In this document: positions 658-62,919 of the stretch, piece by piece
Position numbering within the stretch: the stretch's first letter is position 1
How the letters are laid out: each line of letters begins with the position of its first letter
Translations under genes and position numbers: made by a program
IMG/VR virus record: IMGVR_UViG_3300020202_000001
Span: 160,419-224,418 of that record
Direction: 5' to 3' (one strand)
Length of the DNA stretch: 64,000 nt
Notes under the pieces: model-generated
Told to the model about the DNA's origin: nothing
The model's input: only the letters and a program-made list of their open reading frames with translations
Databases searched by the model: none

Positions 658-2829
658 ATGTGGATCAAGCGAGCGCTCTTCAGGAACATCGGCCGCCACC
701 GCGAGCTGGACATCTACTTCCAGCGCGGGCTGGTGGGGATCTTCGGCCCGAACGGGTGGGGCAAGTCCACGATCGTCGACGGGATCTACGCCTGCCTGAC
801 GAACGACTGGAGCCGGTTCGCCGGCGTGAAACTCGACAACATCCGCGACACGGCCGACCCCGATGAGGAGTCGAGCATCACGGTCTGGGGCGAGCACGGG
901 GACGTGCCGTTCGAGGTGTTCCGCCGCCTCCGCCGGGCCGAGAGCGAGAAGCGGAAGAAGGGCCTCCGCAAGGACAACGAGCTGATCGTCGACGGTAAGA
1001 CGTTCGACAAGGACGAGGACATCAGGCGTGAGCTGACGGTACGCCTCGGCGTCAACCACAAGCTGATCGGCACGCACGTCTTCGTGGCCCAGCGGGAGAT
1101 GTTCCGGTTCGTCTCCGACACCCCGGGCGACCGGGCGGCGACGTTCCAGATGCTCTGCGGGACCGAGAAGGCCAAGCAGATCGTCGACGCGATCGAGGCC
1201 CTGCTGGAGCAGGACAAGGAGCTGCTGGTCGTCGTCGACGACAACAGCGACGAGATCAACGCCCGCATCGGCGGCCGGGCGGTCGAGCTGCAGGCGGCCA
1301 AGGAGGAGCTGGCGGCCGCCACGGCGCTGCTGCTGCCCAAGAAGCGGCGGCTACTTTCAAAAACCGTTATTGAGAAGCGGCAGGCCTGGCGGCGGGCGGT
1401 CAAGGCGATCACGGCCCTGAAGCCGACGATCGTCGCGAGGAAGAAGGAGGTGTCGTCGGCGGAGCTGAAGTACACGGTGACGTCCACGGAGCTGAACGCC
1501 CTCGCCGCCGCCTTCAAGCGGGACAAGCCGCTGGCAGAGGAGGCTCGGGCCACGCTGAAGCGGATCACCGAGTACAACGAGCGACAGGAGGTGCAGGGCA
1601 ACATCGAGCGGCGGCTGGCCGACGCCCGGACGAAGGTGAAGGAGCTGGGCGACCGCCCGCCCCTCCACGCGTCGGACGACAACCGCGAGCGCCTCGTCGA
1701 GGAGCGGGGCACGCTGCGGGTGGAGTACCGGGAGAACAAGACGCTCCTGACCACGTTCGCGATCGAGGGCGTGGTGAAGTGCCCGACGTGCGGCACGAGC
1801 GTCCGGGACCTCGACGAGCACCTGCGGCTCGTGAAGGTCAAGCAGCCCAGGCTCAAGGCGCGGGGGCTGAAGCTCGCCAACTTGATCGAGGCGATCGACG
1901 CGGCCCGCGCGGCCCGGGAGGCGTACGACAAGGAGCGGCGGAAGGCGGACGCGAAGGTCTCGGAGTACGAGGCCCTGCTGAAGCACGCCAAGGTGAGCGA
2001 TCCGCCGAAGGGCGACGCCAAGGCTCTGCAGCGGGTGGTCGACGACTTCGATGCGTTGGAGAAGAAGTACGACAAGGCCCGGCAGGTGAACGGCGATGCC
2101 GTCACCGCCGTGTCCACGGCCAAGGCCCGGCACGACGCCGTGGTCCAGCAGCGGGCGGACCTCCGGGTCGAGCGCGACGGCAACGTCGTGACCGACGAGG
2201 AGCTGGAGCGTGCCAAGAAGCGGATGGCCCGCCACGAGGCGGCCAAGGTCAACGTCGCCGCCCTCAAGCAGAAGGTCGAGGGGATCGAGGCGGCCCAGGC
2301 CCAGGACGTCGAGGAGCTGGAGCGGCTCAAGGCGAAGCTGGCCAAGAACAAGAAGGCCCACCAGTTCGCGGCGAAGCTCAAGAAGATCGCCGAGGTCATG
2401 CACCGGCAGGCCCTGCCGCAGATGGTGGCCCAGTCGAACCTCCAGGACATGGAGGGCGACATCAACAAGATCCTCGACATGTTCGGCAGCCCGTTCTGGG
2501 TCGAGACGGCGGAGGACCTGACCTTCACCGTCCACTTCCCGGGCGAGCCGCCGCGCAACGCCCAGCGGCTCAGCGTCGGGCAGAAGGGCGTGCTCGCGAT
2601 GGCGTTCCGCCCCGCGATCTCCGCCCTGTTCGACGCCGAGATCGGCATGATGACGCTGGACGAGCCGACCGCCGACATGGACGAGCGGAACCGCGGGTTC
2701 ATGGCCGCGGCGCTGGCCCAGTACGCGGCCCAGGTCCGGGGCCGCCGGCAGGTGATCGTCATCACCCACGCGAACGAGCTGCGGCAGTCGTTCGACCAGG
2801 TTGTGGAGCTAGGTGCACATGGCAACTGA
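658..2829 (+). CDS. sbcC: SbcC/Rad50-like SMC-family ATPase
   Basis: Walker A GPNGWGKS, long coiled coils, zinc hook CPTCG, signature LSVGQ, Walker B MTLDEPT, H-loop VITH. Confidence 0.92.
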   Translation: MWIKRALFRNIGRHRELDIYFQRGLVGIFGPNGWGKSTIVDGIYACLTNDWSRFAGVKLDNIRDTADPDEESSITVWGEHGDVPFEVFRRLRRAESEKRKKGLRKDNELIVDGKTFDKDEDIRRELTVRLGVNHKLIGTHVFVAQREMFRFVSDTPGDRAATFQMLCGTEKAKQIVDAIEALLEQDKELLVVVDDNSDEINARIGGRAVELQAAKEELAAATALLLPKKRRLLSKTVIEKRQAWRRAVKAITALKPTIVARKKEVSSAELKYTVTSTELNALAAAFKRDKPLAEEARATLKRITEYNERQEVQGNIERRLADARTKVKELGDRPPLHASDDNRERLVEERGTLRVEYRENKTLLTTFAIEGVVKCPTCGTSVRDLDEHLRLVKVKQPRLKARGLKLANLIEAIDAARAAREAYDKERRKADAKVSEYEALLKHAKVSDPPKGDAKALQRVVDDFDALEKKYDKARQVNGDAVTAVSTAKARHDAVVQQRADLRVERDGNVVTDEELERAKKRMARHEAAKVNVAALKQKVEGIEAAQAQDVEELERLKAKLAKNKKAHQFAAKLKKIAEVMHRQALPQMVAQSNLQDMEGDINKILDMFGSPFWVETAEDLTFTVHFPGEPPRNAQRLSVGQKGVLAMAFRPAISALFDAEIGMMTLDEPTADMDERNRGFMAAALAQYAAQVRGRRQVIVITHANELRQSFDQVVELGAHGN
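1354..1377. promoter_or_regulatory. degenerate copy of the 24-bp palindrome, inside sbcC
   Basis: ctttca-aaaa-ccgt-tatt-gagaag; AT-rich island in a GC3-biased gene. Confidence 0.55.
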
Positions 2830-3778
2830 GTGTCTCCGATTGCAAGTCTCGCCCGAGGGACAGGTGTGGTTCGGCGACGACCGCGAGGTCGCCGTCAACT
2901 CACGCCTGTCCCCCGAGGCGTTCGTCGCCGGCGAGCGGTTCCACGACGCGAAGCTGGTGCGGTTCCTCGGCCGGGCGGACAACGCCGTCCTGGTCGAGGC
3001 CGTGCACCAGCACAAGGCCCGGCTGGACCCGACGCAGCGGCTGTCGCTGCCGAAGGTCCAGATCGGGAGCCCGCAGATGGCGCTGGGCAAGCGGCCCGGC
3101 GACGTGCTGCCGGGCCTGTGGCACGCCTGTGTCAGCTCCGACGTGTTCGCCAGCTGGTACGAGCTGGCGGACGCGGACTACGTCGTCTACTCGCTGGTCG
3201 CGGCCGTGCGGGCCAACGGCGGGCGGCCGGACGACAAGGCGCGGCGGATCATGTACTACCACCCGGCGTGGCCGGCGATGAGCTTCACGCCCGCCTACGA
3301 CATCGACGCGTGCTGCGTGACGCTCGCGACGATCGTGGACGTGCGGTGGTTCACGCACCCGGCCAAGCCACACCGCCCGAGCAAGCTGTGGACGTACCTC
3401 GGGCTGACGCCGGAGAACGCCCGGGCGGTCTGCGGGGGCAAGCAGTACGGCGGCCACCACTACGACCGGGCGCGGACGGCGATGCGGGCGTGGCTCGGCT
3501 TCGACCCGCTCGTCTCGCACATGCTCGAAGGGAGCCTGGCCGAGAGCGGCCCGGCGTTCCTGCGACGCATCTGCGCGACGACGGAGGAGCGGAGCAAGGG
3601 CCTCCTGCTGGCGACGCGGAAGTACGTCCAGTTCTTCCGCGACGTGTGGGCGGCGGAGCGGTCGCAGGGCCGCCAGGCGTTCGAGCCCGAGATGTTTTTC
3701 AACACGACCGACGAGGTCACGGCGTACCGCTTACACCGGCAAACGCTGCACACGCCCGCCGAGGGCGGGCCGATTTGA
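2819..3778 (+). CDS. IS110/Tas-like Nop-domain protein, probably catalytically inactive
   Basis: HPAWPAMSFTP...TLATIVDVRWF...SKLWTYLGLTP and KGLLLATRKYV resemble the IS110 C-terminal/Tas Nop domain; no DEDD tetrad and no catalytic SG serine visible. Confidence 0.6.
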   Translation: MATECLRLQVSPEGQVWFGDDREVAVNSRLSPEAFVAGERFHDAKLVRFLGRADNAVLVEAVHQHKARLDPTQRLSLPKVQIGSPQMALGKRPGDVLPGLWHACVSSDVFASWYELADADYVVYSLVAAVRANGGRPDDKARRIMYYHPAWPAMSFTPAYDIDACCVTLATIVDVRWFTHPAKPHRPSKLWTYLGLTPENARAVCGGKQYGGHHYDRARTAMRAWLGFDPLVSHMLEGSLAESGPAFLRRICATTEERSKGLLLATRKYVQFFRDVWAAERSQGRQAFEPEMFFNTTDEVTAYRLHRQTLHTPAEGGPI

Positions 3779-3803
3779 CGCCCCTCTAACACGGCTGTAA
3801 CAT
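3775..3803 (+). promoter_or_regulatory. sigma70-type promoter for the RAMP-like gene
   Basis: TTGACG-17 bp-TAACAT. Confidence 0.65.
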
Positions 3804-3866
3804 GCTGTCGCGAATGGCATCGCGCACGGAACGCGCGGTTCGGCGGCACAGCCAAGGACGGCTGGA

Positions 3867-4397
3867 GTGCGAGAACTAACTGTCAGGATCAGGTTCACGA
3901 AGCACTGCCTCGGCAGGGTGCTTGACCGGTCGGCGGCGGACGGGCGAATGGTCTTCGCCCGCACCCCGGACGCCCACGTCATGTTCCCCGCGAGCTGGCA
4001 TGCCTCGAACATGGTCCTCGCGGCGAAGTTGCTCGGGCGGCATCAGGGCTCGGTACGCAAGATCCTCTGGGACCCCGAAGTGGACTGCGTGACCCGGCCC
4101 GACCGGTGGTTCAAGCGGTACTACACCGGCAGGGACAACAAGCGACGCTTCGCGGTACACGAGGCGTTCTTCCCCGGCCAGGTGGTGGGCCTGAACTGTG
4201 CGGTCCCGTCCGAGGTGTCCGACGACGACCTCGTGCAGCTGATGAACATCGCCGGCCGGTACAAGGGCCTGAGCCCGTGGGACCCCGGCGAGTACGGACA
4301 GTTCCAGGTGGAGTCGATCGCGTTGCGACGAGGGCCGGCAATCCCTCCCGCCGCGACACAGAAGGAGAGCGAACAACAGTCAAACGTCAGCGCATAA
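3867..4397 (+). CDS. stand-alone RAMP (Cas7/Csm3-like) protein
   Basis: LTVRIRFTKHCLG (beta1), VMFPAS, HEAFFPGQ, C-terminal G-rich loop AGRYKGLSPWDPGEYGQFQV. Confidence 0.6.
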   Translation: MRELTVRIRFTKHCLGRVLDRSAADGRMVFARTPDAHVMFPASWHASNMVLAAKLLGRHQGSVRKILWDPEVDCVTRPDRWFKRYYTGRDNKRRFAVHEAFFPGQVVGLNCAVPSEVSDDDLVQLMNIAGRYKGLSPWDPGEYGQFQVESIALRRGPAIPPAATQKESEQQSNVSA

Positions 4398-4425
4398 AGA
4401 AGGCCTTCGACCGGCATCGAAGGCC
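4394..4425 (-). terminator. intrinsic terminator on the minus strand
   Basis: perfect 9-bp stem ggccttcga/tcgaaggcc (4402-4410/4417-4425) followed by ttctttat on the minus strand. Confidence 0.65.
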
Positions 4426-4482
4426 CTCTCGTTCTAGGAGGTAGCTACCCCTGCGGGCGTCCACCGAAGGTTTCCAACGCCC
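4394..4482 (-). ncRNA. candidate small RNA of about 85 nt
   Basis: bounded by a minus-strand promoter and terminator; internal hairpins; contains anti-Shine-Dalgarno ctcctag; no ORF. Confidence 0.45.
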
Positions 4483-4484
4483 AC

Positions 4485-4513
4485 ATCATAGCGCCCTCCT
4501 GAACGCAATGCAA
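4485..4513 (-). promoter_or_regulatory. sigma70-type promoter on the minus strand
   Basis: TTGCAT (4513-4508)-17 bp-TATGAT (4490-4485). Confidence 0.6.
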
Positions 4514-4585
4514 TACGAGTCAAGCCCCCGCGTGCGCGAAAAACGCCGTGCCGGGTCTCCGCGTCCAGGTTGAGGGCACTACGCA

Positions 4586-6130
4586 ATGGCAGAAAAACCG
4601 CAGATAACGCTGCTCAAGAGCGGCAACCGGCTGGTCGTCGCCCCTACCCCGACGCAGGTCAGGGAGGTGCTCGAAACGAAGCTGAGCTTCACCGCGAAGC
4701 ACATGCTCTACGGTGCCGAGCGGTTCGAGGAAGGCAACAAGGGCAAGCGGTTAGAGCTGATCGACTACCAGTGCTACTTCCTCGATCACAAGAACCGCAT
4801 CGCGACCAGCCTCGGCTTTTACCACCGCATCACCAAGGCCCTGAAGGCCCGCGGCTACCCGGTCAGGATTAAGGACCTGACGCCCCCGGCAAAGCCTGAG
4901 ATCTTCGTCCCCCGCTGGAACCGCGTTCTCGGCCCCGACTCCGGCATCAAGCTGCGGCACGGGCAGAAGGAGTTCCTGGAGTGGTTCGTCGCCCAGGTGC
5001 AGGCCGGGCTCCCCGGCCGCGCCGACGCCCCGCCCGGCTACGGCAAGAGCTTCCTGATCGGCCTCGCGGCCATGCTCTTCCCGAAGGCCAAGATCCACTA
5101 CACGTCCAAGCGGGCCAGCGTCATGCGGGACCGCATCTTCCCCGAGCTGTGCGGGATGCTCCCCGACGTCGGCCTGGTCGGCGGCGGGGTGCGGAAGGCC
5201 GGCTGTCGCGTGCAGGGGTACACGTTCGACTCGCTCCACCACAGCGACGGCAAGTGCGACATCCTCTTCACCGACGAGTGCCACGAGGCGGCGGCGGACG
5301 ACGCGGCCGAGCAGCTGGCGAAGTACGACGAGAGCCTGAACTACGGGTTCAGCGCCACGCAGGACATGCGGATCGACAACAAGGACCTCCGCGTCGAGGC
5401 CATGTTCGGGCCGGTCGGCTACAAGATGACGTACCAGACCGCCGTGAAGCACGGGCTCGTCGTGCCGCTCGAAGTGCGGTGGCGGAACGTGCGGATGGAC
5501 ATGGACCCGTGCGAGGGGATCGAGGACTCGGTCGAGCGTAAGCGGTGGGGCATCTGGCGGAACCGCCACCGCAACCAGCTGATCGCCAAGGACGCGCGGA
5601 GCCACCCGGACCAGCAGGTGCTCGTCACCTGCGAGACGATCGAGCACGCGCTGGCCCTGAAGCGCGAGATGCCCGAGTTCACGCTCGTGTACGCCGCGCG
5701 GGACATCTCGTTCGAGAAGCGACGCTACTTCCGCAAGCTGGGCCTGTGGCCGAAGAAGGGCCTCAAGCAGATGACGGAGGAGCGCAAGCAGAAGCTCACC
5801 CGCCTGTTCGAGCGGGGCAAGCTGCGGAAGGTGATCGTCACGACCGTCTGGAACGTCGGCGTGTCGATGAACCACCTCGAAGTCCTGGTGCGGGCCGACG
5901 CCGGCGGCAGCCCGATCATGGACACGCAGATCCCCGGCCGCGTCAGCCGCACGAACAAGGCGATCGGCAAGAAGCAGGGCGTCATCTACGACTACAAGGA
6001 CCAGTTCAACTCCGGCTTCAAACGGAAGAGCGGCAGCCGCCGCTCCAGCTACGTCGGCAACGGCTGGACCCAGGTCGACCCAGGCACGAAACCCGGCGAG
6101 AAACTGCAGCACCGGCTGTGGGAGGATTGA
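4586..6130 (+). CDS. superfamily 2 DNA helicase (UvsW/XPB-like)
   Basis: Walker A APPGYGKS, DECH, motif III SAT, motif VI QIPGRVSR. Confidence 0.88.
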   Translation: MAEKPQITLLKSGNRLVVAPTPTQVREVLETKLSFTAKHMLYGAERFEEGNKGKRLELIDYQCYFLDHKNRIATSLGFYHRITKALKARGYPVRIKDLTPPAKPEIFVPRWNRVLGPDSGIKLRHGQKEFLEWFVAQVQAGLPGRADAPPGYGKSFLIGLAAMLFPKAKIHYTSKRASVMRDRIFPELCGMLPDVGLVGGGVRKAGCRVQGYTFDSLHHSDGKCDILFTDECHEAAADDAAEQLAKYDESLNYGFSATQDMRIDNKDLRVEAMFGPVGYKMTYQTAVKHGLVVPLEVRWRNVRMDMDPCEGIEDSVERKRWGIWRNRHRNQLIAKDARSHPDQQVLVTCETIEHALALKREMPEFTLVYAARDISFEKRRYFRKLGLWPKKGLKQMTEERKQKLTRLFERGKLRKVIVTTVWNVGVSMNHLEVLVRADAGGSPIMDTQIPGRVSRTNKAIGKKQGVIYDYKDQFNSGFKRKSGSRRSSYVGNGWTQVDPGTKPGEKLQHRLWED

Positions 6131-6133
6131 CCC

Positions 6134-6952
6134 GTGGAGGCAACCTTGAAACGACGCAGGCGGGCCGGCGGCGCTGACCGCGGCCTGGAACAACTGGCGA
6201 CGCTGCTGCTGCGCACCTGGCAGGTGGAGCTGCAGCGTTACCTGAGCATGGGCCGCGAGCCCGACGACGTCGCCGACCCCGACGACGTCGTCCGCCACCT
6301 GACCGACACGTCGGGGGCGAGGCGGCAGCGGCGGATCGACAACCTGACGGAGAACATCGAGCTGGCCCCGGCCCGCGCCCGGGTCGACCGGTCGACGAGC
6401 CTGTGGATGGACGTCGCCCGGATCGTGGTGCGGAACCGGTTCGACCCGGAGCGGTTCGTGCGGCGGCAGTTCGCCGTGCTGTCGCCCCGGATGCCGACCG
6501 AGAAGCGCAGCCGGCTCCCGCAGCCGGAAATGCTCAAGAGCGAGCGGGCGATCAAGAACTACAAGGCCGGGCACGGCGTCTCGATCACTGAGATCCAGGC
6601 CGCCTTCAAGTCGCAGCTCTCCCGGTTCAAGGTGCAGGTCGCGGTCCTCGGGCAGTCGCGGTTCTACAACCTCGACAGCGAGGGGACGTGGATCGCGGTG
6701 CTGACCAACGAGGAGGAGCCGCTGTCGGCGCTGTTCCGGTACTGCACCGCCCGCCGCATCCTCAAGCAGGCGGGGCTCAAGCAGCGGGCGAAGTTCAAGG
6801 AGATCGCGGCCACCTACCGGACGGCGGCGGCGATCCAGTACGTCTTCGAGGCGGACGAGTACGACGAGATCTGGAAGGACCACCTGCCCGAGGGCTGGTC
6901 CGAGAAGGCCCAACGTATCTACCGCAGCTTTTACGGCTTCAACGACGAGTGA
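6134..6952 (+). CDS. hypothetical replication-module protein
   Basis: 272-aa ORF with high GC3 between the two helicases; function not recognised. Confidence 0.7.
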   Translation: MEATLKRRRRAGGADRGLEQLATLLLRTWQVELQRYLSMGREPDDVADPDDVVRHLTDTSGARRQRRIDNLTENIELAPARARVDRSTSLWMDVARIVVRNRFDPERFVRRQFAVLSPRMPTEKRSRLPQPEMLKSERAIKNYKAGHGVSITEIQAAFKSQLSRFKVQVAVLGQSRFYNLDSEGTWIAVLTNEEEPLSALFRYCTARRILKQAGLKQRAKFKEIAATYRTAAAIQYVFEADEYDEIWKDHLPEGWSEKAQRIYRSFYGFNDE

Positions 6953-6966
6953 AGGAGCACGCGACC

Positions 6967-8643
6967 ATGCCCAAGCAGAGCGACAAGAAGAAGCGGAAAG
7001 AGGGTCAGTTCGAGGACATGAAGCGGCGGCCGGCGCTCGACCAGCGGAAGAAGGAGCTGATGATGGCCGTCCTCCTCCGCAACGAGGACGCCTTCAAGGC
7101 CACCCGGGAGATCCTCAAGCCCGAGCACTTCGGGGAGTTCGACCGCGGGTACAAGGTCGCGTGGGCGTTGGCCAACGAGTTCTACGACGAGCACGAGGCC
7201 CTGCCCGGCTTCGAGTTCCTGATGGCGGAGATCGAGGGGGCCAGCGAGGCCAACCCGAACCTGTTCAACGACGCCGAGTACGACAAGCTCTCGTCGTTCA
7301 TCGAGTACGCGTTCGACAAGGACAGCTTCGAGGCGGACATCACCCAGGACCGCGCCAGCGCGGACTGGGGCATCAAGACGGCGAAGAAGTTTCTCGACGA
7401 GCGGCTCGCCGCCAAGATGAAGGAGGTCATCCAGTCCAAGGACATGCTCCCGGCGAACCTGCCGGAGTTCATGAACCAGATGGCCGCCGAGGCGGAGCAG
7501 ATCGCGTCCGTCTCTACCGAGGTCGACTTCGACCCGTTCCCCGACGACTGGCACAAGACCGCCAGCATCAAGGTCTTCTCCACCGGCATCCCGTTCTTCG
7601 ACGAGTTCCTCGGCGGCGGCCACGCGCCGGGCGAGGTGTACGGGCTGATGGGGCCGTACGGGTCGTGCAAGACGACGATCGCGTCGATGCTGATCGTCGA
7701 GGCGGCCAAGGCGTTCTACCAGGAGCACCTGCTCGACCCGAGCCAGCCGCCCAAGCTGGCCGTGATCGCCTGCTACGAGGCCCGCAAGCCGGAAATGCGG
7801 AACCGGACGCTCGGGTACGCCGCGATGATCCGCCGGGCGACGATGGAGGCGATGGCCCCGGACAAGCCGCTGGAGCTGGCCGGGTTCTCGACCTCCGACA
7901 AGCTGAAGAAGTACGAGAAGCGGATCTGGCGGGCGAAGATCAACAACGGCGAGAAGGTGGCCGGGGAGCTGGAACGCGTCATGGACGCGCTGACCTACCT
8001 CCGCCGGCACATGGTCGTGCTGGACATGACCGGCCACGAGACGAAGGGCGTGGGCAACGGCGGGATCAAGGAGGTCTCGCAGATGATCTCCAACGTCTGC
8101 CGCCAGCGGAAGGCCAAGTGCGGCCTGTTCGTGATGGACTACGTCGGCGCGATGGTGAAGCGGTACATGGGCGGCAACGACGTCGAGACGAGCGAGCTGC
8201 GGCACCTGATCGGCGGGGCTCCCCTGACGATCAAGAGCCAGATCGGCGACGTGTTCGACTGCCCCTCGTACGCCCTCCACCAGCTCGCCGGCGAGGCCAA
8301 CAGCTTCGGGTCGGCCGTCCTGGCCGACCACACGAACGCGGCGGAGTCGAAGAGCTTCGCGGAGAACCTCGACTTCAGCTTCTCGATCAGCAAGCCGCAG
8401 GACCCCGACGCGGTCGCGCTGTTCGGCTGCACGAAGCACCGCCGCCAGCCGGGGCGGATGAACACGATCATCAAGATCGACGGCGGGCTCAATCGCGTGT
8501 TGTCGGCCGACGACAAGTACATGATTAACACCCACGCCCGGAAGATCATGCTGATCGCCGACGTCAACAAGCTGCCCGAGAACTCGGCGATCAAGAAGAA
8601 CAGCGCCGCGGCCGGCGGCGGGTCGGCGTCCAGCCTGGACTAG
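6967..8643 (+). CDS. DnaB-like replicative helicase
   Basis: ATG 6967; N-terminal helical domain (LKPEHF), Walker A GPYGSCKT, Walker B FVMDYV, HQL motif, TKHR arginine-finger region. Confidence 0.8.
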   Translation: MPKQSDKKKRKEGQFEDMKRRPALDQRKKELMMAVLLRNEDAFKATREILKPEHFGEFDRGYKVAWALANEFYDEHEALPGFEFLMAEIEGASEANPNLFNDAEYDKLSSFIEYAFDKDSFEADITQDRASADWGIKTAKKFLDERLAAKMKEVIQSKDMLPANLPEFMNQMAAEAEQIASVSTEVDFDPFPDDWHKTASIKVFSTGIPFFDEFLGGGHAPGEVYGLMGPYGSCKTTIASMLIVEAAKAFYQEHLLDPSQPPKLAVIACYEARKPEMRNRTLGYAAMIRRATMEAMAPDKPLELAGFSTSDKLKKYEKRIWRAKINNGEKVAGELERVMDALTYLRRHMVVLDMTGHETKGVGNGGIKEVSQMISNVCRQRKAKCGLFVMDYVGAMVKRYMGGNDVETSELRHLIGGAPLTIKSQIGDVFDCPSYALHQLAGEANSFGSAVLADHTNAAESKSFAENLDFSFSISKPQDPDAVALFGCTKHRRQPGRMNTIIKIDGGLNRVLSADDKYMINTHARKIMLIADVNKLPENSAIKKNSAAAGGGSASSLD

Positions 8644-10092: not shown

Positions 10093-10255
10093 GGCCCGGC
10101 GACAGTGGATGCGGCACTTCCGCCGGGTCTACCTCGACCGGACGGGCCTGCACTACATCGGCCCGATCACCGAGCTGCAGATGTTCCTCAACTGCAACTA
10201 CCTGCCGGAGACGGCGGTCTACCAGCTGACCGGGGTCGGCGGGGCCTGGATCTAA
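10046..10255 (+). CDS. small hypothetical protein
   Basis: coding-like GC3 bias; stop codon lies inside a palindrome copy. Confidence 0.55.
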   Translation: MTTVTCHPLSNYAAREARRQWMRHFRRVYLDRTGLHYIGPITELQMFLNCNYLPETAVYQLTGVGGAWI

Positions 10256-10272
10256 AAACCGGTTTTGAGATC
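10249..10272. promoter_or_regulatory. 24-bp palindrome copy upstream of the DNA polymerase
   Basis: gatcta-aaaa-ccgg-tttt-gagatc. Confidence 0.85.
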
Positions 10273-13200: not shown

Positions 13201-13756
13201 CACGGTGCAGCAGGCGCAGATCATCATCGACATCGTGTTCCAGCTGTACCCGGGGCTCAAGCCGTTCTTCACCGAGGCCCAGCAGCGGTCGAAGGACCCC
13301 CGCTGGATCTGCTCGTGCTTCGGGGCGTTCCGCCGGTTCCCGCAGACCGACGACTTCTCGCTGCAGGGCGAGTTCGAGCGGCAGGCGATGAACTTCGGGA
13401 TTCAGTCGGGCATCGCCTCGGCCATGGACCGGGCGCTGGCCTACATGGAGGACTATCGCAACAACACGATCGGGGACCCGGACTTCTTCAAGTTCGCCCT
13501 CCAGATCCACGACGCCGTCCTGCTGCACGTCCCCTACGCCAACGTCGAGCGGGTCGTCGAGGACGTGCTGCCGTACAACCTGACCAAGCGGGTCGAGATC
13601 TACCCGACCACGCTCGACGGGGTGCCCACCGGCGAGGGTCCGTACCACCTGGGCATCGACACCGAGATCTTCGACCACTGGGGCGAGCCGCTCACGCCGA
13701 ACTTCTGCGAGGAGCACGGCATCCCCCTCAAGTACGCCAAAGGAAAGGCAGCGTGA
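10283..13756 (+). CDS. family A DNA polymerase with N-terminal uracil-DNA glycosylase-like domain
   Basis: UDG-4-like VMVLGKMPG..E..G..VGESG, YVTNVLK, HPA; exonuclease FDAE and YDAD; motif A EADFIGAEL, motif B RIAAKNVIFGVAYG, motif C QIHDA. Confidence 0.92.
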   Translation: MQTVKKRRKIITDLDADAKKAEARAAHKEIGGSGLYPLDAPGMPLPGPDFMEHARNLGDLSDFKKVKVEGQGKKKTDTVLDSIGDKLVELHRRALREPGFTMPIQTKPGMRKSVPFVPGHIWGQYMKEYEAGDRIAVDGPRPADVMVLGKMPGKTEVQEGRNMVGESGKLLIDVIREHHIKGSPNWYVTNVLKFQPPDSSGTIKAPWLKDCMPLLHQELRIVRPKYILCLGADASKALLGPKYGVDYMDGRVMELEYPVHMEATDDPDKVLMHKALVMTVVHPAAVVRAPEQRRRLERGMARFAMLQNGIRFDKEEVDIDHRTIRTLEQLQALLHEIDHDPYKKDDWISFDAEWNGEHPQNKGSYVRTMQLAWRPKHAAAIIWSDTTGKFVFCDEDGKPAKKRAIKLLNEWFATKRITMHFGVADLEWMQFIGLTELAKRYRVPLYDKFFGEFEKPQRKKLRKMGFAPGDLVPAWVRTHFEGGHDTGLAGHAIEETAQLGLEVLAMRYTTCPRYDIPLHNWKEAFCKEKGYKAKDLEGYGPCPDEIIVPYGCYDADATLRLMYEQLPLIDNDYEGNCCRESFWESMLTVGPILEMHCTGIPVDRKRIDFLTAAFMKARAEQEEKIRKWARWPEFNIRSVTQVREFLFGEKYNGKKTPTGDIVSVRPRKGVDGAKHTAKSLYLEPILDTSKPPKAWFDIKDKGLEHEHTPGTGKTILGVLAQENQEQSEYVQWIRDYRFLDQVLKSVLRPPVVDKDGEVVRDETAEAASSIDASTGQEASPYSFGRDNLGGVVYDAGLAAVICGDGRVRTHLYPTTETKRWRSARPNLQNMSKRRDPDYTRLLGGTKNEKGKWVGGDYKYKLRSLLHAIPGHVLVEADFIGAELYLMAVMSGDPTMIEHATRNQLPEDDPLYYDIHSNVAVLAFNLKCEPTKKGLESIGKVSLRIAAKNVIFGVAYGRQAKAIALQCKEEGNPITVQQAQIIIDIVFQLYPGLKPFFTEAQQRSKDPRWICSCFGAFRRFPQTDDFSLQGEFERQAMNFGIQSGIASAMDRALAYMEDYRNNTIGDPDFFKFALQIHDAVLLHVPYANVERVVEDVLPYNLTKRVEIYPTTLDGVPTGEGPYHLGIDTEIFDHWGEPLTPNFCEEHGIPLKYAKGKAA

Positions 13757-14487: not shown

Positions 14488-14519
14488 CCCCCCGTTAGGG
14501 TGGTATCCGGCTCGCCTTC

Positions 14520-18829: not shown

Positions 18830-19477
18830 ATGAGCGACGACGCACCACGCAAGAACTGGTTCAGCGAGCGGATGAAGGGGCAGAACGCCCAAGGCCGCCT
18901 GGACCACGAGCTGTTGCAGTTCGAGGCCGAGCGGCTGAAGTGGCTGCTCCAGCGATTCGGGCTGAAGAAACGGATGCACCAGGTGATCCGCCGCTACCAC
19001 GCGGACACCGGCCGTTCGGAGCTTCGGTTCGAGGCGTTCAACGAAGTGTTCCCCACCTTCCCCTTCCTGATCGGGTGCACGAAGCTCCAGGGCGTACCGA
19101 TGCCCGGCCGCGTGTCCAAGAGCGGGCAGCAGAAGGTGACGCCGGTCGACTACCACATCTACCTCGACCCGGCCTCGACCGAGCCGGCGCGGTTCAAGAA
19201 CTTCACGAAGGTCCCGTTCGTCGGGGCCTACAAGGACTTCTACGCCGCGTCGGCCGGTCGGGCCAACGGTCGGAAGGTGGCACTGATCTTCCCGCGCAAG
19301 GGGTTCCTGCACGGGATGGTCATGCACAACGACTCCTCCGAGCAGTTCTGGACGGAGGGACTGTCGTGGGTGTACAAGGTGCCCGGGACGGAGAACCGCC
19401 TGTACGTCCAGCCCCTGTCGGCCCTCGTGGAGGCGATCTACGAGGGAGGCAGGGGGTGGCGTCCGCCCGGGGAGTAG
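18830..19477 (+). CDS. hypothetical protein
   Basis: 215-aa ORF, high GC3. Confidence 0.75.
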   Translation: MSDDAPRKNWFSERMKGQNAQGRLDHELLQFEAERLKWLLQRFGLKKRMHQVIRRYHADTGRSELRFEAFNEVFPTFPFLIGCTKLQGVPMPGRVSKSGQQKVTPVDYHIYLDPASTEPARFKNFTKVPFVGAYKDFYAASAGRANGRKVALIFPRKGFLHGMVMHNDSSEQFWTEGLSWVYKVPGTENRLYVQPLSALVEAIYEGGRGWRPPGE

Positions 19478-19500
19478 ATCTCAAAACCGGTTTTTAGATC
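19477..19500. promoter_or_regulatory. 24-bp palindrome copy
   Basis: gatctc-aaaa-ccgg-tttt-tagatc, ending 3 bp upstream of a -35 box. Confidence 0.85.
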
Positions 19501-19503: not shown

Positions 19504-19532
19504 TAGACATTCCCCCTGACGGGGGATAGACT
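19504..19532 (+). promoter_or_regulatory. sigma70-type promoter for the ParB-like gene
   Basis: TAGACA-17 bp-TAGACT. Confidence 0.55.
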
Positions 19533-19590
19533 CCGGCCACGTCGCCGGAACGACTGAACACCACTCACAGAAGAAGGAGACCCCAAGACC

Positions 19591-20484
19591 ATGAGCAAGA
19601 ACGAATCCACGCTTCTCCCCGAAGAGCAGAAGCGCGCGGCGATCTACGAAGAGATGTCCCCGGCCCTCAAGAAGGTCGCGGACGACTTCCGCAAGAAGGA
19701 GGCCGTCGCCTCCAAGGGCAACCTCACCCTCCGCTACGACATGGGCGTGAAGGTGAAGCAGGTGATCGAGGAGGAGGCCGAGTACGGCGCGAACGCCGTC
19801 AAGCAGCTCGCCGCCTTCCTCGGCCGCTCGGAGACGGACCTGTACGACCTGCGGAACGTCGTGACCACCTACGACAAGGACGAGATCATCGCCCTGTCGG
19901 AGCGCGAGATGGCCAACGGCGGGCACATCACGATGGGCCACGTCATGGCCATCGTCCGCGTGAAGAAGCAGGCCGACCGGAAGAAGCTGTGGGACCGCGT
20001 GTTCGCCGAGTCCCTCACCGTGGGCCAGCTCGCCGGCGAGGTGTCGGCCGGGTACGAGAAGGCCAACAAGCGCTCGGGCGGCCGCAAGCCGTCCAAGCCG
20101 ACGAGCCCCGTGGCGGGCATCGCCCAGATCGCGGAGCGGACGCAGGAGCTGAACAACCGCTTCGAGGGCTGGGACGAGACCGTGTTCACGGCCATCGCCG
20201 ACCTCCCCCCGGACAAGATCGACAAGATCGTCCTGGAGAAGGCCGAGAAGGCCAGCGCGGAGCTGCACAAGCTGGAGGAGAACCTCACCCAGTACGTCGG
20301 CAAGTACGACAAGGGCGTCGAGCACATCCGCAAGGTCGTGGCGGCGAAGGCGAAGGAAGAGGCCGACGCCAAGGCCGAGCACAAGAAGGAAGAGAAGCAG
20401 CTCGAAGGCAAGGGCGCGAAGAAGGCAGTCGGCAAGAAGGCCGACGCGAAGGCCGGCAAGAGCCGCCGGCCCGCTGCCGCCTAA
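19591..20484 (+). CDS. ParB/Spo0J-type HTH DNA-binding protein lacking the CTPase domain
   Basis: LGRSETDLYDLRNVV and ITMGHVMAIVRV...LWDRVFAESLTVGQL resemble the Spo0J DNA-binding domain; coiled-coil and basic tail; strong RBS aaggag. Confidence 0.6.
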   Translation: MSKNESTLLPEEQKRAAIYEEMSPALKKVADDFRKKEAVASKGNLTLRYDMGVKVKQVIEEEAEYGANAVKQLAAFLGRSETDLYDLRNVVTTYDKDEIIALSEREMANGGHITMGHVMAIVRVKKQADRKKLWDRVFAESLTVGQLAGEVSAGYEKANKRSGGRKPSKPTSPVAGIAQIAERTQELNNRFEGWDETVFTAIADLPPDKIDKIVLEKAEKASAELHKLEENLTQYVGKYDKGVEHIRKVVAAKAKEEADAKAEHKKEEKQLEGKGAKKAVGKKADAKAGKSRRPAAA

Positions 20485-21937: not shown

Positions 21938-21950
21938 AGGAGTTCACGCA

Positions 21951-23981: not shown

Positions 23982-23983
23982 CG

Positions 23984-24830: not shown

Positions 24831-25009
24831 CCTGTCCGTTCTGCCACCGCGACGTGCCGAAGGAGCAGCTGAAGTCGGGGCGGTGTCCGCACTGCGGCAC
24901 GTCCGTCCCGACCGTGCACCTCCAGCGGCGGTGGCAGCCCGTGCCGATGATCGACCACAGCCAACGACGCGGCCGCGAGGGCCGCCTCAAGCGACGAAGG
25001 GACGACTGA
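24827..25009 (+). CDS. small zinc-ribbon protein
   Basis: CPFC and CPHC motifs. Confidence 0.65.
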   Translation: MTCPFCHRDVPKEQLKSGRCPHCGTSVPTVHLQRRWQPVPMIDHSQRRGREGRLKRRRDD

Positions 25010-25010
25010 C

Positions 25011-25202: not shown

Positions 25203-25207
25203 GGGCC

Positions 25208-25231
25208 GATCCAAAAACCGGTTTTGAGAAG
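25208..25231. promoter_or_regulatory. 24-bp palindrome copy fused to the thyX RBS
   Basis: gatcca-aaaa-ccgg-tttt-gagaag then gag; ATG at 25240. Confidence 0.85.
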
Positions 25232-32059: not shown

Positions 32060-32583
32060 TGCGTCGCGTCTACCAGCGTCACACCGACCTGAGCGAGCCC
32101 CACAAGGGCGATTGCTTCGCCGCGTGCGTGGCGACCGTCCTCGGCCTGACGCTCGACGAGGTGCCGAACTTCTGCAGCTCGTCGGGCGACTGGTGGGCCG
32201 AGCTGCAGGCGTGGCTGTGCGACCGGGGGCTGCAGGCGATCGAGATCCAGATCCCGTTCGAGGAGATCATCCGCGAGGGGCGGAAGCTCCCGATCGGGCG
32301 GCTGGTGGTGGACACGCCGGTCATCCTCTCGGGCAAGAGCCCGCGCGGGGACTGGAACCACTCGATCGTCGGGCTGTACGACGAGCAGCCGACCGACACG
32401 CCCGGCGAGTTCAAGGCCGGCTTCGTCTACTACCACGACCCCAACCCCGACGCCGGCGAGGACCCCACGAAGTGGCTCGTCGGCATGCCGATCCAAATAC
32501 TGGTTTTTGGATTGGCGAACCCGAAGAGGGGCTACCGGCTCCTCAACCCGAAGAAGGAAACATGCCAGCAAAGCTCATCGTAG
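32056..32583 (+). CDS. papain-like (C39-type) peptidase-like protein
   Basis: Q...GDCFAACVATVLGL (Cys) and WNHSIVG (His). Confidence 0.55.
   Translation: MMRRVYQRHTDLSEPHKGDCFAACVATVLGLTLDEVPNFCSSSGDWWAELQAWLCDRGLQAIEIQIPFEEIIREGRKLPIGRLVVDTPVILSGKSPRGDWNHSIVGLYDEQPTDTPGEFKAGFVYYHDPNPDAGEDPTKWLVGMPIQILVFGLANPKRGYRLLNPKKETCQQSSS
32490..32513. promoter_or_regulatory. degenerate palindrome copy inside a CDS
   Basis: gatcca-aata-ctgg-tttt-tggatt; AT-rich codons in a GC3-rich gene. Confidence 0.65.
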
Positions 32584-37624: not shown

Positions 37625-37700
37625 ACCTATCAGCGGAACCTACCCCTTTGTGGGGGAGGGCTCGCGTTGCTAAGATGCCCGGGGCATCGAGGTCAAGGAC

Positions 37701-37724
37701 GATCTAAAAACCGGTTTTGAGAAG
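37701..37724. promoter_or_regulatory. 24-bp palindrome copy between a candidate promoter and the RBS
   Basis: gatcta-aaaa-ccgg-tttt-gagaag; TGC-TAAGAT at 37668-37676 upstream; ATG 37733. Confidence 0.85.
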
Positions 37725-44410: not shown

Positions 44411-44434
44411 GTTTTCAAAACCGGTTTTTAGAAG
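44411..44434. promoter_or_regulatory. palindrome copy upstream of the tubulin gene
   Basis: gttttc-aaaa-ccgg-tttt-tagaag followed by RBS aaggag. Confidence 0.8.
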
Positions 44435-49344: not shown

Positions 49345-49368
49345 GATCTCAAAACCGGTTTTTGGATC
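49345..49368. promoter_or_regulatory. 24-bp palindrome copy
   Basis: gatctc-aaaa-ccgg-tttt-tggatc. Confidence 0.85.
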
Positions 49369-50429: not shown

Positions 50430-50514
50430 GGGCGACCGTCCCCGCAAACGACCCTCGGCGGTTTTCAGACCCCGTTAGACCAGTAGCATCACCAGCACAG
50501 AGGAGACCAGACAG

Positions 50515-53500: not shown

Positions 53501-54159
53501 GCTCGTACATCGGCAACACGCTGTCCCCGCTCCTCGGCCCGGCCGGGGCGATCGGCGGCATGGTCGGCGGCAAGGTGGTCGGCACCGCCCGCCGCGACGC
53601 GATCGAGAGCGAGCAGCGAGCCCGGGCCGCCGAGAAGCGCCGGGGGTGGAGCGAGCGTGACGGCGACAACGACGGGCACGTCAACGACGGCCGCCCGGAC
53701 GAGCGGGACTACCGCAAGGCCGCCGGCTTCCTCGACAACGTCAAGAACACGGACTGGAAGGCCGCCCTCCCGGGCGTCGCCGGCCGGGCCGGGGTCGGGG
53801 CGGCGCTGGGCGGCGGCGTGGCCGGGATCGCCCACCTGATGAAGGGCGACGAGGAGAAGAAGCGGAAGGGCAACGGTGCCCTGGCCACGGTCGGCAAGGG
53901 AGCCCTGCTCGGCGGCGGGATCGGGACGGGCATCGGCCTGTCCCGCGAGGTGGTCGGCCCGGCCCTGAAGAAGGGGTCGGCCGTCGACCGGCTCGTCAAG
54001 CGTGCCGCCCTCCGCGCGTTCGTGAAGAAGGCGGCCGTCACGCCGGGCCTGGCCCAGCGGCTGCGGAAGATGAAGGCGGAGAAGACCGTCCGCCAGTACC
54101 AGCCCGCCACGGACTCGATCCGCAGCGGGGACAGCGACAACGACGTGAAGGCGGCCTGA
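50515..54159 (+). CDS. large modular low-complexity protein (putative virion polyprotein) with HExxH metallopeptidase module
   Basis: 1214 aa; P/A/G/Q-rich; recurrent K-x-A motifs; TEHELGH plus downstream LWHEAQAN; glycine-zipper segments. Confidence 0.8.
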   Translation: MSMIPGQQMGGPMGSPGMGMAPSMSGSMAFPRSLFGGMGRGMKAPPNPAAHPQAPQSQPATADVVGQMAQQAHQQNAQAKIAGFEARRNEPGLQQPSSVDPVKTAYEQYQAQLGQSQSTGSTVAQAQTGVDGLPKGQKTAAAAVTAAASTAAADFHGNPSTWAALRALPLTNKRASAVPPPAQALPADPGMGPMSTAISAPPAAPAAAAPAPVGGTPPAQPDPAMGGQAGGMAQAPAPAPAAGGMAAPAPAPGMPPVPGQAPAQMPPGTMQQDAGVQQSMGELFQEANAPDSAGDDMKFQNIVQASDHWGLERFAKTAAPGDLFDVEGDLAAMDAEQQPAVKQKPALPPVAAKPPATRPAAPATQPAGAPQGVRPPQGTPQAPKIAPGPSGSLPGASRPPVQPRPVPVQPGAGRAQPLPTAPPAAKPVPVRPPATRPAPVAPGSGMINGKPASQVLKGIPKQGSTVQDDAAEAALRTFVFGKQAWQDNGVKDRTSASGESTNVGFAHRNDDYDRGPAAWENSAKYLKHGAKGGDRRIPSSSTTKLAKARQGETTFGQDSKPGDKLAQLVKKILSKRGVKPAPGTKQAANLANEAKRQGIYQGATQAPAPAPAGRPAAATKLPPMVTGAAPAMPKAAGYGALAGVGAALGGLLGGGAYVAANPTAPSRLAAMGTDSTAFPGAVNSVGGGALLGGAGGALVEYLRRRKAEAEQPATLPGTAKAAAAVAAKKPFPATAGLLQTENDLREDEEAEKVALTVEDGGLPSRALANTVGHVGNTLGLAGPIMSLRSYVNPQGTPQRRQKHEESAGLLEAAEPDALSGTKLRLGGSDLVDDLLWKREEPGQDLPWTQQIGGRNFQNPRTGPLGKALGLISTPLAALQGNLLRAPHYNPETDVATNYWDERGVTEHELGHAIDFNTVSSEKGKGKVSDSWLGRQGRGTVRDLYRLAYGIPGVNLWHEAQANRKSWKALESQLGKGSDKLLEHEYDRAKVLPAGYGSYIGNTLSPLLGPAGAIGGMVGGKVVGTARRDAIESEQRARAAEKRRGWSERDGDNDGHVNDGRPDERDYRKAAGFLDNVKNTDWKAALPGVAGRAGVGAALGGGVAGIAHLMKGDEEKKRKGNGALATVGKGALLGGGIGTGIGLSREVVGPALKKGSAVDRLVKRAALRAFVKKAAVTPGLAQRLRKMKAEKTVRQYQPATDSIRSGDSDNDVKAA

Positions 54160-54181
54160 TCTCAAAACCGGTTTTGGGATC
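54158..54181. promoter_or_regulatory. 24-bp palindrome copy
   Basis: gatctc-aaaa-ccgg-tttt-gggatc. Confidence 0.85.
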
Positions 54182-57638: not shown

Positions 57639-57662
57639 GATCCAAAAGCCGGTTTTTGAAAG
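57639..57662. promoter_or_regulatory. palindrome copy
   Basis: gatcca-aaag-ccgg-tttt-tgaaag. Confidence 0.75.
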
Positions 57663-62236: not shown

Positions 62237-62448
62237 CGATCACCGGCACCGTGAAGTCCGTCCAGATCATCAGCTACACCAACGGCGGCCCGAACAAGGA
62301 GCCCACGCCGGGCACCGTGGAGGTCGGCGTCGTGCTGGGCGAGTGGCACAACGACGGGGAGCTGAAGTTCCGCGTCCCGCACGGCAAGGCGGCCCCGTAC
62401 CAGGTCGGCCGCGAGGTCACCCTCACCATCAAGCCGAAGGGCAAGTGA
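62233..62448 (+). CDS. small hypothetical protein
   Basis: ATGA overlap, high GC3. Confidence 0.7.
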   Translation: MTITGTVKSVQIISYTNGGPNKEPTPGTVEVGVVLGEWHNDGELKFRVPHGKAAPYQVGREVTLTIKPKGK

Positions 62449-62452
62449 CGCC

Positions 62453-62710
62453 ATGGCAGACGAGGTCGAGTTCGTCGAGATCACGATCGAGAAGGCCCCG
62501 CGGTGCCACTGGCACTCGAACTGCACGACCCCGAGGGCGGGGAGCGGCGTCATGAAGATCGTGCGGGAGGACGCCGAGGCCCAGCGCACGGTCTTCGAGT
62601 GCCTGGGCTGCGGCAAGTGGGGCTACGTTCCCTACGGCCACTCCTTCGGCGTCCCGTTCCGCTCGCCCCCTCTACCGCCGGAGGCCGTCGCATGTGCACC
62701 GGAACCCTGA
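62453..62710 (+). CDS. small zinc-binding hypothetical protein
   Basis: CHWHSNC and CLGCG. Confidence 0.65.
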   Translation: MADEVEFVEITIEKAPRCHWHSNCTTPRAGSGVMKIVREDAEAQRTVFECLGCGKWGYVPYGHSFGVPFRSPPLPPEAVACAPEP

Positions 62711-62919
62711 TCGAGATCCGACGTGACGCGGAGCTGATCCACGCCGAGCTTGTCGCCGGCGGGATGCAGGACTTCGACGTCTTCCTCTACCGGTACGCCA
62801 ACGCCTGCTGTGCCCTCGAACTCCTCCGGGAGGAGGGACGGGTGACCCGCAGCGCGTTCATGGTGTTGGCGGCCGATCCAAAAACCAGTTTTGAGAAGGA
62901 GCAACAGCCATGTGGATGA
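62692..62919 (+). CDS. small hypothetical protein
   Basis: RBS ggagg, ATG 62692; its C-terminal codons carry a palindrome copy. Confidence 0.55.
   Translation: MCTGTLIEIRRDAELIHAELVAGGMQDFDVFLYRYANACCALELLREEGRVTRSAFMVLAADPKTSFEKEQQPCG
62875..62898. promoter_or_regulatory. palindrome copy fused to an RBS
   Basis: gatcca-aaaa-ccag-tttt-gagaag then gag; ATG 62910. Confidence 0.8.

Follow-up and report, generated by a model that had tools for sequence, protein, structure and literature searches.

Several systems are known in which one protein recognizes many dispersed copies of a single short site. On the IncP plasmid RK2, the regulator KorB recognizes through its ParB-family DNA-binding domain one AT-rich palindrome, the OB operator, and acts as a CTP-dependent sliding clamp that needs KorA or TrbA to lock at promoters (PMC11790492). 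OB sites are scattered over the whole mobile genome at kilobase intervals, with some copies at the −35 edge of promoters, some further away and some far from any promoter; the korB gene is under the same control, and KorB also serves partition with IncC. The stoperators of Cluster A mycobacteriophages such as L5 and Bxb1 are asymmetric 13-mers bound by a monomer of the immunity repressor of these temperate phages, more than twenty of which are spread through a genome, in promoters and in short intergenic spaces next to start and stop codons, in an orientation that must match transcription, and they are proposed to stop both initiation and elongation (PMC9283540). In Streptomyces, the repressor of the 41-kb temperate phage phiC31 binds highly conserved inverted repeats (CIRs) in many intergenic regions of a high-GC phage genome, including its own promoter. 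The chromosome-organizing sets MatP-matS, Noc-NBS and SlmA-SBS comprise dozens of dispersed short palindromes bound by a dimeric protein, which mark or avoid one chromosome region without being tied to gene starts; Noc is a ParB-fold protein with a CTPase domain and a membrane-targeting helix whose site has a CCCGGG centre between A/T arms, while MatP uses a coiled coil to bridge sites. Dispersed operator sets of this kind have not been described in jumbo phages, and none is known to be evenly spaced.

Here we describe an AT-rich 24-bp palindrome in an uncultivated soil jumbo phage with a circularly assembled genome of 224,291 bp, of which the analyzed window is the last 64 kb (64,000 nucleotides). 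We read 95% of the genome and found 35 copies, corresponding to about 38 in the whole. As with KorB, a predicted ParB-family DNA-binding domain is the candidate partner of a palindrome scattered over a mobile genome, at promoter-like elements (consensus matches only) and at a distance from them, including upstream of the candidate regulator's own gene, and the OB core (TTTAGCSGCTAAA) is the same kind of site, with A/T-rich arms around a GC centre. Unlike KorB, the phage protein has only the DNA-binding domain plus a coiled coil, without the N-terminal CTPase domain, and OB sites are not reported to be evenly spaced. The copies share with stoperators their number and their position next to start and stop codons, but are palindromes whose slight internal asymmetry occurs in both orientations on a genome with all genes on one strand. 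The phiC31 repressor belongs to a different family, and no even spacing is reported for the CIRs; in contrast to the Noc, SlmA and MatP sites, the copies are uniformly distributed and strongly tied to gene heads.

A sequence-only reading of the window had listed eleven copies at quasi-regular spacing, and this observation is confirmed: all eleven start coordinates carry the element, nine as strong and two as degenerate copies. The features of the window are as follows, the palindromes being given without strand.

1354..1377, no strand: degenerate copy (24 bits) inside the SMC/Rad50-like gene at 658-2829, splitting what would otherwise be an 11.5-kb gap between strong copies.
10249..10272, no strand: strong copy (45.5 bits) overlapping the stop codon of a small ORF and ending 10 nt before the DNA polymerase start at 10283.
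19477..19500, no strand: strong, nearly perfect copy abutting the upstream stop codon, 3 nt before a −35-like box and 90 nt before the ParB-like gene; probable autoregulatory operator, with the same arrangement in the related phage L034.
19504..19532, + strand: sigma-70-like promoter candidate (TAGACA, 17 nt, TAGACT) between that copy and the ParB-like gene, conserved almost base for base in L034; its function is inferred from consensus match and conservation only.
19591..20484, + strand: candidate binder of 297 aa with a predicted ParB/Noc-type HTH DNA-binding domain.
25208..25231, no strand: strong copy 5 nt after a stop codon, whose right arm supplies part of the ribosome-binding site of thyX, which starts at 25240; same position in L034.
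32490..32513, no strand: degenerate copy (30 bits) at a gene junction, in the last 31 codons of the upstream ORF and 48 nt before the start at 32562, splitting a 12.5-kb gap.
37671..37676, + strand: −10-like hexamer TAAGAT with TTGTGG 17 nt upstream, following two terminator-like hairpins and lying 24 nt before the next copy; inferred from the sequence.
37701..37724, no strand: strong copy at the 3' end of a 204-nt non-coding gap, with the right arm running into the ribosome-binding site of a gene that starts at 37733.
44411..44434, no strand: strong copy 16 nt before the tubulin/FtsZ-like gene that starts at 44451.
49345..49368, no strand: strong copy preceded by a GC-rich hairpin, 23 nt before the start at 49392.
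54158..54181, no strand: strong copy overlapping the stop codon of the 1214-aa ORF, 35 nt before the start at 54217.
57639..57662, no strand: strong copy at the 3' end of a 318-nt non-coding gap, 12 nt before the start at 57675.
62875..62898, no strand: strong copy at the 3' end of a 199-nt gap, with the right arm merging with the ribosome-binding site of a gene that starts at 62910.

A weight matrix built from the nine strong copies scores the eleven sites at 23.8-45.6 bits, while nothing else in the window exceeds 12 bits and twenty shuffles gave at most 12.6 bits. With up to 3 mismatches to the consensus of the sequence-only reading there are 5 matches, against 0 in 100 shuffles. That exact 24-mer consensus never occurs, as the best copies have 1 mismatch, and of the two copies said to lie deep inside coding sequences only 1354 does. 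The merging of the right arm with the ribosome-binding site holds at 25208, 37701, 44411 and 62875. Of the downstream genes that had been named, we confirmed the DNA polymerase, the ParB-like gene, thyX and the tubulin gene, but could not confirm a glycosyltransferase or a lipoprotein for the genes directly downstream. Genome-wide the scores are cleanly bimodal, with sites at 24 bits or more and the next best position at 11.8 bits.

The even spacing, whose comparison with random placement had been proposed beforehand as a test, is statistically real. In the window the coefficient of variation (CV) is 0.30, with P about 3e-4 against uniform or gene-start nulls, and genome-wide the copies are about 6 kb apart, with 33 gaps that run from 2.3 to 10.4 kb and a CV of 0.36 that was matched by 0 of 20,000 random placements. 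The weak copies, including those inside genes, split the largest gaps (P = 0.003), density is uniform (0.17 per kb in the window and 0.16 per kb elsewhere), and relatives show the same 4-11 kb scale. The sites are also tied to gene heads: 28 of 35 lie in the 6.9% of the genome that is non-coding (P about 1e-26), usually between a stop codon and the next ribosome-binding site, with 23 within 40 nt of the next start codon and 12 within 8 nt of the upstream stop codon. Two sites (window 19477 and contig position 4057) abut a −35-like box, an arrangement also found in L034, and others lie 3-30 nt downstream of −10-like hexamers or of a second promoter-like motif. In another relative, L036, two tandem copies precede the ParB-like gene.

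The candidate binder has a recognition helix at about residues 81-93, an invariant R-S-G-G-R-K-P loop, a C-terminal coiled coil of about 100 residues and a basic tail. Its AlphaFold model (pLDDT 80) is all-helical, all the best Foldseek matches are ParB/Spo0J/Noc DNA-binding domains and cover about 100-125 columns of that domain only, and Pfam finds only a partial HTH_ParB match at residues 105-148, with no ParB N-terminal CTPase domain. An AT-rich palindrome of 20-24 bp lies just upstream of the homologous gene in 7 of 8 related phages; one relative, L037, has the protein but no detectable site. Genomes whose recognition helix reads ET.LY.LRN or LYDLRN keep a CCGG-type centre (CYGT in L034), those with A/K..LYA.(R/K)D have a GTAC-type centre, and one with a different helix has a different palindrome, although this co-variation rests on eight genomes that are not phylogenetically independent, and the relative L035 keeps the same site although its protein is only 31-33% identical overall. 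The genes next to the binder gene, the only ones examined for a ParA-type partner, gave no Pfam match in the window or in five relatives. Nothing seen here points to lysogeny: no relative of the protein was found in 185,579 species genomes, and no integrase was seen in the annotated parts of this incompletely annotated genome.

The interpretation offered with the original observation, namely a global phage operator or else a genome-organizing or centromere-like site set, with the 19591 protein as the binder, is partly supported. The choice of binder gains real comparative support, and the operator reading fits where the sites lie. The genome-organizing reading is not excluded, and is the only one that directly accounts for the even spacing and for the weak copies that fill large gaps. 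The centromere-like (parS) version is not supported, since the protein has no CTPase domain and the sites are spread uniformly rather than clustered in one region.

With moderate confidence at most, we favor the view that the palindromes are double-stranded-DNA sites for a dimer of the phage's own ParB/Noc-fold protein. In this view the protein is made from a host-type promoter with one site at its −35 edge, so that it probably sets its own level, and would then occupy about 38 sites, most at the head of a block of genes, either between a promoter-like element and the ribosome-binding site or directly between one gene's stop codon and the next gene's ribosome-binding site. The most likely effect would be to gate transcription into each block by blocking initiation or elongation, as KorB operators and mycobacteriophage stoperators do, although an activating or polymerase-recruiting role is possible. 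The spacing and the weak copies suggest that the bound protein acts over a limited distance, and it may also bridge sites through its coiled coil; however, it lacks the CTPase domain that lets KorB and ParB act at a distance, so that distance-limited action has no demonstrated mechanism. About 12 sites follow a stop codon with no recognizable promoter nearby, which fits a roadblock but fits an internal promoter equally well, and the systematic A..G or C..T asymmetry at positions 6/19 is not explained. The sites, their placement, spacing and conservation in relatives and the predicted fold of the protein are what our analysis establishes, whereas binding by this protein and the consequences of binding are inferred from sequence and comparison alone.

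There is statistical evidence that the spacing itself is under selection, in a phage with its own RNA polymerase and a tubulin. A more far-reaching possibility, which we regard as doubtful but not excluded, is that a CTPase-less ParB-fold protein with a coiled coil uses landing sites kept by selection no more than about 10 kb apart, with weak copies even written into coding sequence, to divide a jumbo-phage chromosome into regular domains of about 6 kb that would be both transcription units and physical loops. This would be a phage-encoded chromatin-like organization, shared by a large, unnamed and uncharacterized family related to ParB that has lost the CTPase domain, of about 2,400 clusters at 50% identity. 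If the link between protein and site holds, it would provide a simple system of one protein and one 24-bp site, with natural specificity variants, for studying how very large phage genomes are regulated or folded, and a way to read transcription-unit structure directly from the sequence of uncultivated relatives.

Two alternatives seem unlikely but remain possible. The palindrome may instead be the promoter, or promoter-specificity element, of the phage-encoded multisubunit RNA polymerase (a beta-like protein of 1501 aa is encoded), with transcription starting in or just after the right arm and internal promoters every 6 kb or so keeping expression even along a one-strand genome. The element is the dominant conserved motif at gene heads, precedes replication, nucleotide-metabolism and structural genes alike, and is an easily melted AT-rich island in 68% GC DNA, regular spacing would be natural for a polymerase of limited processivity, and the copies that follow a stop codon with no other promoter in sight fit as well. 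However, a promoter needs direction, whereas the element is symmetric and occurs in both A5/T4 orientations; in many copies the overlapping ribosome-binding site leaves almost no room for a start site, two copies and the L034 orthologue lie upstream of a conserved −35/−10-like pair rather than replacing it, other copies lie downstream of separate promoter-like motifs, copies occur in tandem in L036, and the centre co-varies with the helix of a DNA-binding protein. Slightly less likely still is a primarily architectural role for the same protein at the same sites, in which coiled-coil-mediated bridging would fold the chromosome into loops of about 6 kb in the manner of MatP or Noc, perhaps for compaction, positioning by the phage tubulin or packaging, with secondary effects on transcription. 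The spacing, far more even than chance or gene structure predicts, the weak intragenic copies in the largest gaps, the uniform density, the coiled coil and basic tail and the tubulin homologue are consistent with this, while bridging itself is conjectural. In larger non-coding gaps, moreover, the sites are not placed freely but sit against the ribosome-binding site or a promoter, several long non-coding gaps have no site, and the positions before the ParB-like gene and before thyX are conserved.

Binding by a host protein, for example a LacI- or other HTH-type regulator recognizing an AAACCGGTTT core that the phage would exploit to time its gene expression, is very unlikely, although a core of this kind is a known LacI-family operator type (PtxS), one perfect 24-bp copy lies upstream of a deaD helicase gene in a soil Pirellulaceae genome, and L035 keeps the identical site despite its very divergent ParB-like protein. 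The centre differs between related phages while staying uniform within each genome, which points to a factor that travels with the phage; relatives span 48-71% GC, and so presumably different hosts, yet keep the same architecture; and no bacterial genome among 185,579 species held more than one strict copy per fetched stretch. The least likely reading is that the element acts as RNA or as a single-strand hairpin (an intercistronic terminator, an RNase processing site or a translational operator), as might be suggested by a palindrome transcribed in most contexts immediately 5' of the ribosome-binding site. This is largely refuted by the pair counts, since the arms do not co-vary to keep pairing: pair 6/19 is complementary in 6 of 27 sites against 12 expected (P = 0.012), and pairs 1/24, 2/23 and 5/20 are broken in about half of the copies. 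The mean RNA folding energy is −2.7 kcal/mol, with 16 of 27 sites folding no more stably than −3 and one at 0.0, there is no U-tract after a GC stem, and two copies lie upstream of the putative promoter that serves the next gene.

The 24-mer proposed in the sequence-only reading never occurs exactly, but the observation itself held, as the element is real and a recognizable copy is found at each of the eleven positions where it had been described. Allowing three mismatches gives five matches in the window, against none in 100 dinucleotide-preserving shuffles, and a weight matrix built from the nine best copies scores the eleven sites at 23.8–45.6 bits, while nothing else in the 64 kb, on either strand, exceeds 12 bits and the best of 20 shuffles reached 12.6 bits. 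Nine copies are strong, while those at 1354 and 32490 are degenerate. The working consensus is GATC-YM-AAAACCGGTTTT-KR-GAWS, in DNA of 68% G+C.

An exact-pattern scan of IMG/VR hit a single contig, IMGVR_UViG_3300020202_000001 (224,418 bp), in which window position 1 corresponds to contig position 160419 and the window forms the last 64 kb. The same contig appears in the metagenome collection in a rotated form, which shows a circular assembly of 224,291 bp with a 127-bp end overlap (window 63874–64000 and contig 1–127), so that the right end of the window continues into contig position 128. Two soil-metagenome DNA runs contain it, and no RNA run was listed. Megablast and tblastn searches against 50,697 records of isolated phages returned no match, and a Pfam search of 30 window proteins left most of them as orphans, so that functional modules could not be defined. 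By retrieving the flanks around proteins we read 212.6 kb, or 95% of the genome, with no conflicts between pieces (contig positions 67282–74409 and 137077–141688 are not covered). Over these stretches the matrix finds 35 sites with bimodal scores, sites scoring at least 24 bits and the next independent position 11.8 bits. Every gene seen lies on the + strand. Apart from the palindromes themselves, the features considered in this part of the analysis are the following.

Window 10283–13756: family-A DNA polymerase fused to a family-4 uracil-DNA-glycosylase-like domain.
Window 14490–14510, 27050–27070 and 50470–50490, and contig positions 5224, 47550, 96282 and 122805: second conserved intergenic motif.
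Window 14600–16753: 717-aa protein in the DNA-polymerase gene block.
Window 19504–19560: promoter-like stretch following the palindrome copy at 19477.
Window 19591–20484, + strand: 297-aa ParB-like protein, the candidate binder.
Contig 21647–26152 (positions 4045–8550 of the retrieved stretch L041), outside the window: 1501-aa RNA polymerase beta-like protein.
Contig 113560–115056 (positions 6613–8109 of the retrieved stretch L039): adenylosuccinate-synthase-like gene.

To place the sites relative to genes we used a simple third-position-GC gene call, which is a rough one and gave 254 genes and 6.9% non-coding DNA. Of the 35 sites, 28 lie in non-coding DNA (binomial P about 1e-26), 23 end within 40 nt of the next start codon, and 12 begin within 8 nt of the upstream stop codon and often share its bases. 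Where the gap to the start codon is short, the right arm ends GAGAAG and runs into GAG to form the ribosome-binding site, whereas it keeps GATC where the gap is longer. Of the copies inside ORFs, window 1354 is deep in the SMC/Rad50-like gene, while window 32490 is in the last 31 codons of an ORF and 48 nt before the next start codon.

Three contexts recur, with the reservation that promoters are identified here by consensus match only. In the first, the site lies immediately upstream of a −35-like box, as at window 19477 before TAGACA-17 nt-TAGACT and at contig position 4057. In the second, the site lies 3–30 nt downstream of a −10-like hexamer or of a second conserved intergenic motif, TCCCCCGWTCGGGTA, examples being window 37701 and contig positions 47587, 122836, 144691 and 155408. 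In the third, the site is wedged between a stop codon and the next ribosome-binding site, with no promoter-like sequence nearby. The motif TCCCCCGWTCGGGTA (with variants) lies 45–110 nt upstream of start codons, ends in a −10-like TAnnnn and looks like a promoter class of its own; in two cases it lies 20–30 nt upstream of a palindrome.

Across 27 sites the two arms do not co-vary to preserve pairing. Pairs 1/24, 2/23 and 5/20 are complementary in about half of the copies, as random pairing predicts, while pair 6/19 is complementary in only 6 of 27 copies, against 12 expected (P = 0.012). The copies are nearly always A..G (14 copies, e.g., window 25208) or C..T (6 copies, e.g., window 19477) at these two positions, so that nearly every copy has five A in one arm and four T in the other, in either orientation. 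This asymmetry is unexplained, and gene orientation offers no contrast against which to compare it since every gene seen lies on one strand. As RNA, the 24-mers fold with a mean of −2.7 kcal/mol and 16 of 27 are no more stable than −3. This rules out a terminator, a processing hairpin or a cruciform as the selected form, and points to a dimeric protein that reads each half-site separately. A Dam/SeqA-type explanation based on the terminal GATC was also considered and rejected, because GATC is common in this genome (1,600 copies).

The evenness of the spacing, for which the sequence-only reading had proposed a comparison with random placement, is borne out. In the window the ten gaps have a CV of 0.30 (P about 3e-4 against uniform placement or random gene starts), and over the whole census the 33 gaps that lie within read stretches average 5.9 kb, range from 2.27 to 10.37 kb and have a CV of 0.36, with none of 20,000 random placements as even. 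The only two intervals above 14 kb both span stretches that were not read. Density is the same inside and outside the window. Four weak copies in or at the end of ORFs (contig positions 25450, 92356, 161772 and 192908) fall in four of the five largest gaps between the remaining copies, and four random insertions reduce the largest gap as far in 0.3% of trials. Spacing therefore seems to be constrained in itself, with an upper limit near 10 kb.

The 297-aa product of 19591–20484 has a weak partial HTH_ParB match. An AlphaFold model built on ten homologues has a mean pLDDT of 80 and is all-helical, with an N-terminal helical region, a helix-turn-helix (helices 69–77 and 81–93), a conserved loop, a long C-terminal coiled coil and a disordered basic tail. 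A sequence search of the PDB gave nothing significant, but in the fold search all the top Foldseek matches are DNA-binding domains of ParB, Spo0J and Noc (probability about 1, TM up to 0.68 on the target), and the ESM Atlas structure search agrees. There is no ParB N-terminal CTPase domain. The family is large and unnamed, comprising 2,404 clusters at 50% identity with E no greater than 1e-3, and it was not found in 185,579 GTDB species genomes.

Contigs for seven homologues (L034–L037 and L042–L044) are syntenic, with the ParB-like gene followed by thyX some kilobases downstream. L034 (protein 79% identical; 59% GC) has the element before the ParB-like gene, followed by the same TAGACA/TAGACT pair, and also before thyX, with G14 changed to T in both copies. 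The promoter-like stretch after the 19477 copy (window 19504–19560; L034 positions 3276–3330) is conserved almost base for base in this relative, including a CCCCC-TGNC-GGGGG inverted repeat in the spacer and a CCGNCCACGTCGNCGG element after the −10 box, which suggests further regulatory sites at the ParB-like gene. L035 (31–33% identical) has three copies with the same CCGG core, 3.9–6.5 kb apart. L036 and L042 have TCTAAAAAGT..-type palindromes with a GTAC-like centre, L036 having two tandem copies before the ParB-like gene and one before thyX. L044 keeps a CCGG centre, L043 has a different palindrome at two gene heads, and in L037 none was found. In the alignment, the recognition helix reads ET.LY.LRN or LYDLRN in the genomes with a CCGG-type centre and A/K..LYA.(R/K)D in the two genomes with a GTAC-type centre, and it differs again in L043 and L037. 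Sites are uniform within each genome, diverge between genomes and track the helix, which is what a phage-encoded binder predicts, although the sample is small and the genomes are not independent.

We commit, with moderate confidence, to a genome-wide operator array for this protein. The sites, their placement, spacing and conservation, and the predicted fold of the protein follow from the analysis itself, while it is inferred that the protein binds the sites, that it regulates its own gene at 19477 and that it gates transcription elsewhere. Sites abutting a −35-like box or lying downstream of a promoter-like element occupy classical repressor positions, and those wedged between a stop codon and a ribosome-binding site match the roadblock logic of stoperators. 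The interpretation in the sequence-only reading, of either a global phage operator or a genome-organizing or centromere-like site set, is partly supported.

The main rival is a promoter for the phage's own RNA polymerase, whose 1501-aa beta-like subunit matches jumbo-phage RNA polymerase beta-subunit families in PHROGs and whose gene contains one of the weak intragenic copies, at contig position 25450. That the element stands before genes of all classes, and that about 12 copies have no other promoter nearby, would fit such a role, but its symmetry, its use in both orientations on a one-strand genome, the overlap with the ribosome-binding site, the tandem copies, and its position upstream or downstream of separate promoter-like motifs all speak against it. 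A primarily architectural role, with the coiled coil bridging sites into loops of about 6 kb, best explains the spacing but not the fine placement, and the two roles may coexist, as they do for KorB. A host factor is unlikely, because the centre of the site changes between related phages. A parS centromere is not supported, since the candidate binder has no CTPase domain, the sites are not clustered and no adjacent ParA was recognized.

The nearest systems are KorB-OB of RK2 (PMC11790492), the Cluster A stoperators (PMC9283540), the phiC31 CIRs and, as organizers, MatP-matS and Noc-NBS. In the view taken here the element works like the first two but belongs to neither family, as the candidate binder lacks the CTPase clamp domain of KorB and the site is a palindrome bound presumably by a dimer, not an oriented 13-mer bound by a monomer. 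No sign of lysogeny was seen in the parts annotated. What is new is the setting, a jumbo phage with its own polymerase and a tubulin, together with the truncated ParB-fold family of the candidate binder and the even spacing with gap-filling copies.

The motif was also sought outside the phage. A scan of metagenomes found dozens of tandem units with a 21–22 bp period containing almost the same core (GATCTCAAAACCGGTTTT...) in four contigs of 37–42% GC (L022, L025, L027 and L033). These were considered as iteron or centromere arrays, but the contigs have no long ORFs and no similarity to the phage, so they are probably an unrelated, likely eukaryotic, satellite, although the sequence coincidence is striking. 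Single metagenome hits on a further six contigs (L014–L016, L020, L021 and L031) show no protein similarity and are near the chance expectation in number. In GTDB genomes the motif occurs as five single copies, of which the perfect one (24 bp, A5/T5 form) lies in ordinary Pirellulaceae chromosomal DNA (L051 positions 4072–4095, MAG DASYHJ010000016.1), about 350 nt upstream of a DeaD-box helicase gene. One of the ESM Atlas clusters nearest to the candidate binder is mostly Planctomycetota, and both observations hint at the host phylum, as a lead only.

The adenylosuccinate-synthase-like gene at contig 113560–115056 hits the PHROG family annotated as PurZ, which raised the possibility of a 2-aminoadenine (Z-base) genome. 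In NCBIfam, however, it scores higher as PurA (186 bits against 58) and falls below all cut-offs, so such a genome is not established; if real, it would alter recognition of the A-tracts. The 717-aa protein at window 14600–16753 has an extreme low-complexity C-terminal half in which long poly-aspartate runs alternate with GKKGDKKPA-type basic repeats. Acidic repeat proteins occupy the same region in relatives L035 and L037, and the protein could be a DNA mimic or a chromatin-like protein. Over the whole readable genome GCGC is strongly under-represented (778 copies against about 1,880 expected from its trinucleotides) and CTAG is also rare, while GATC and CCGG occur at the expected level. The GCGC deficit suggests avoidance of a GCGC-specific restriction system.
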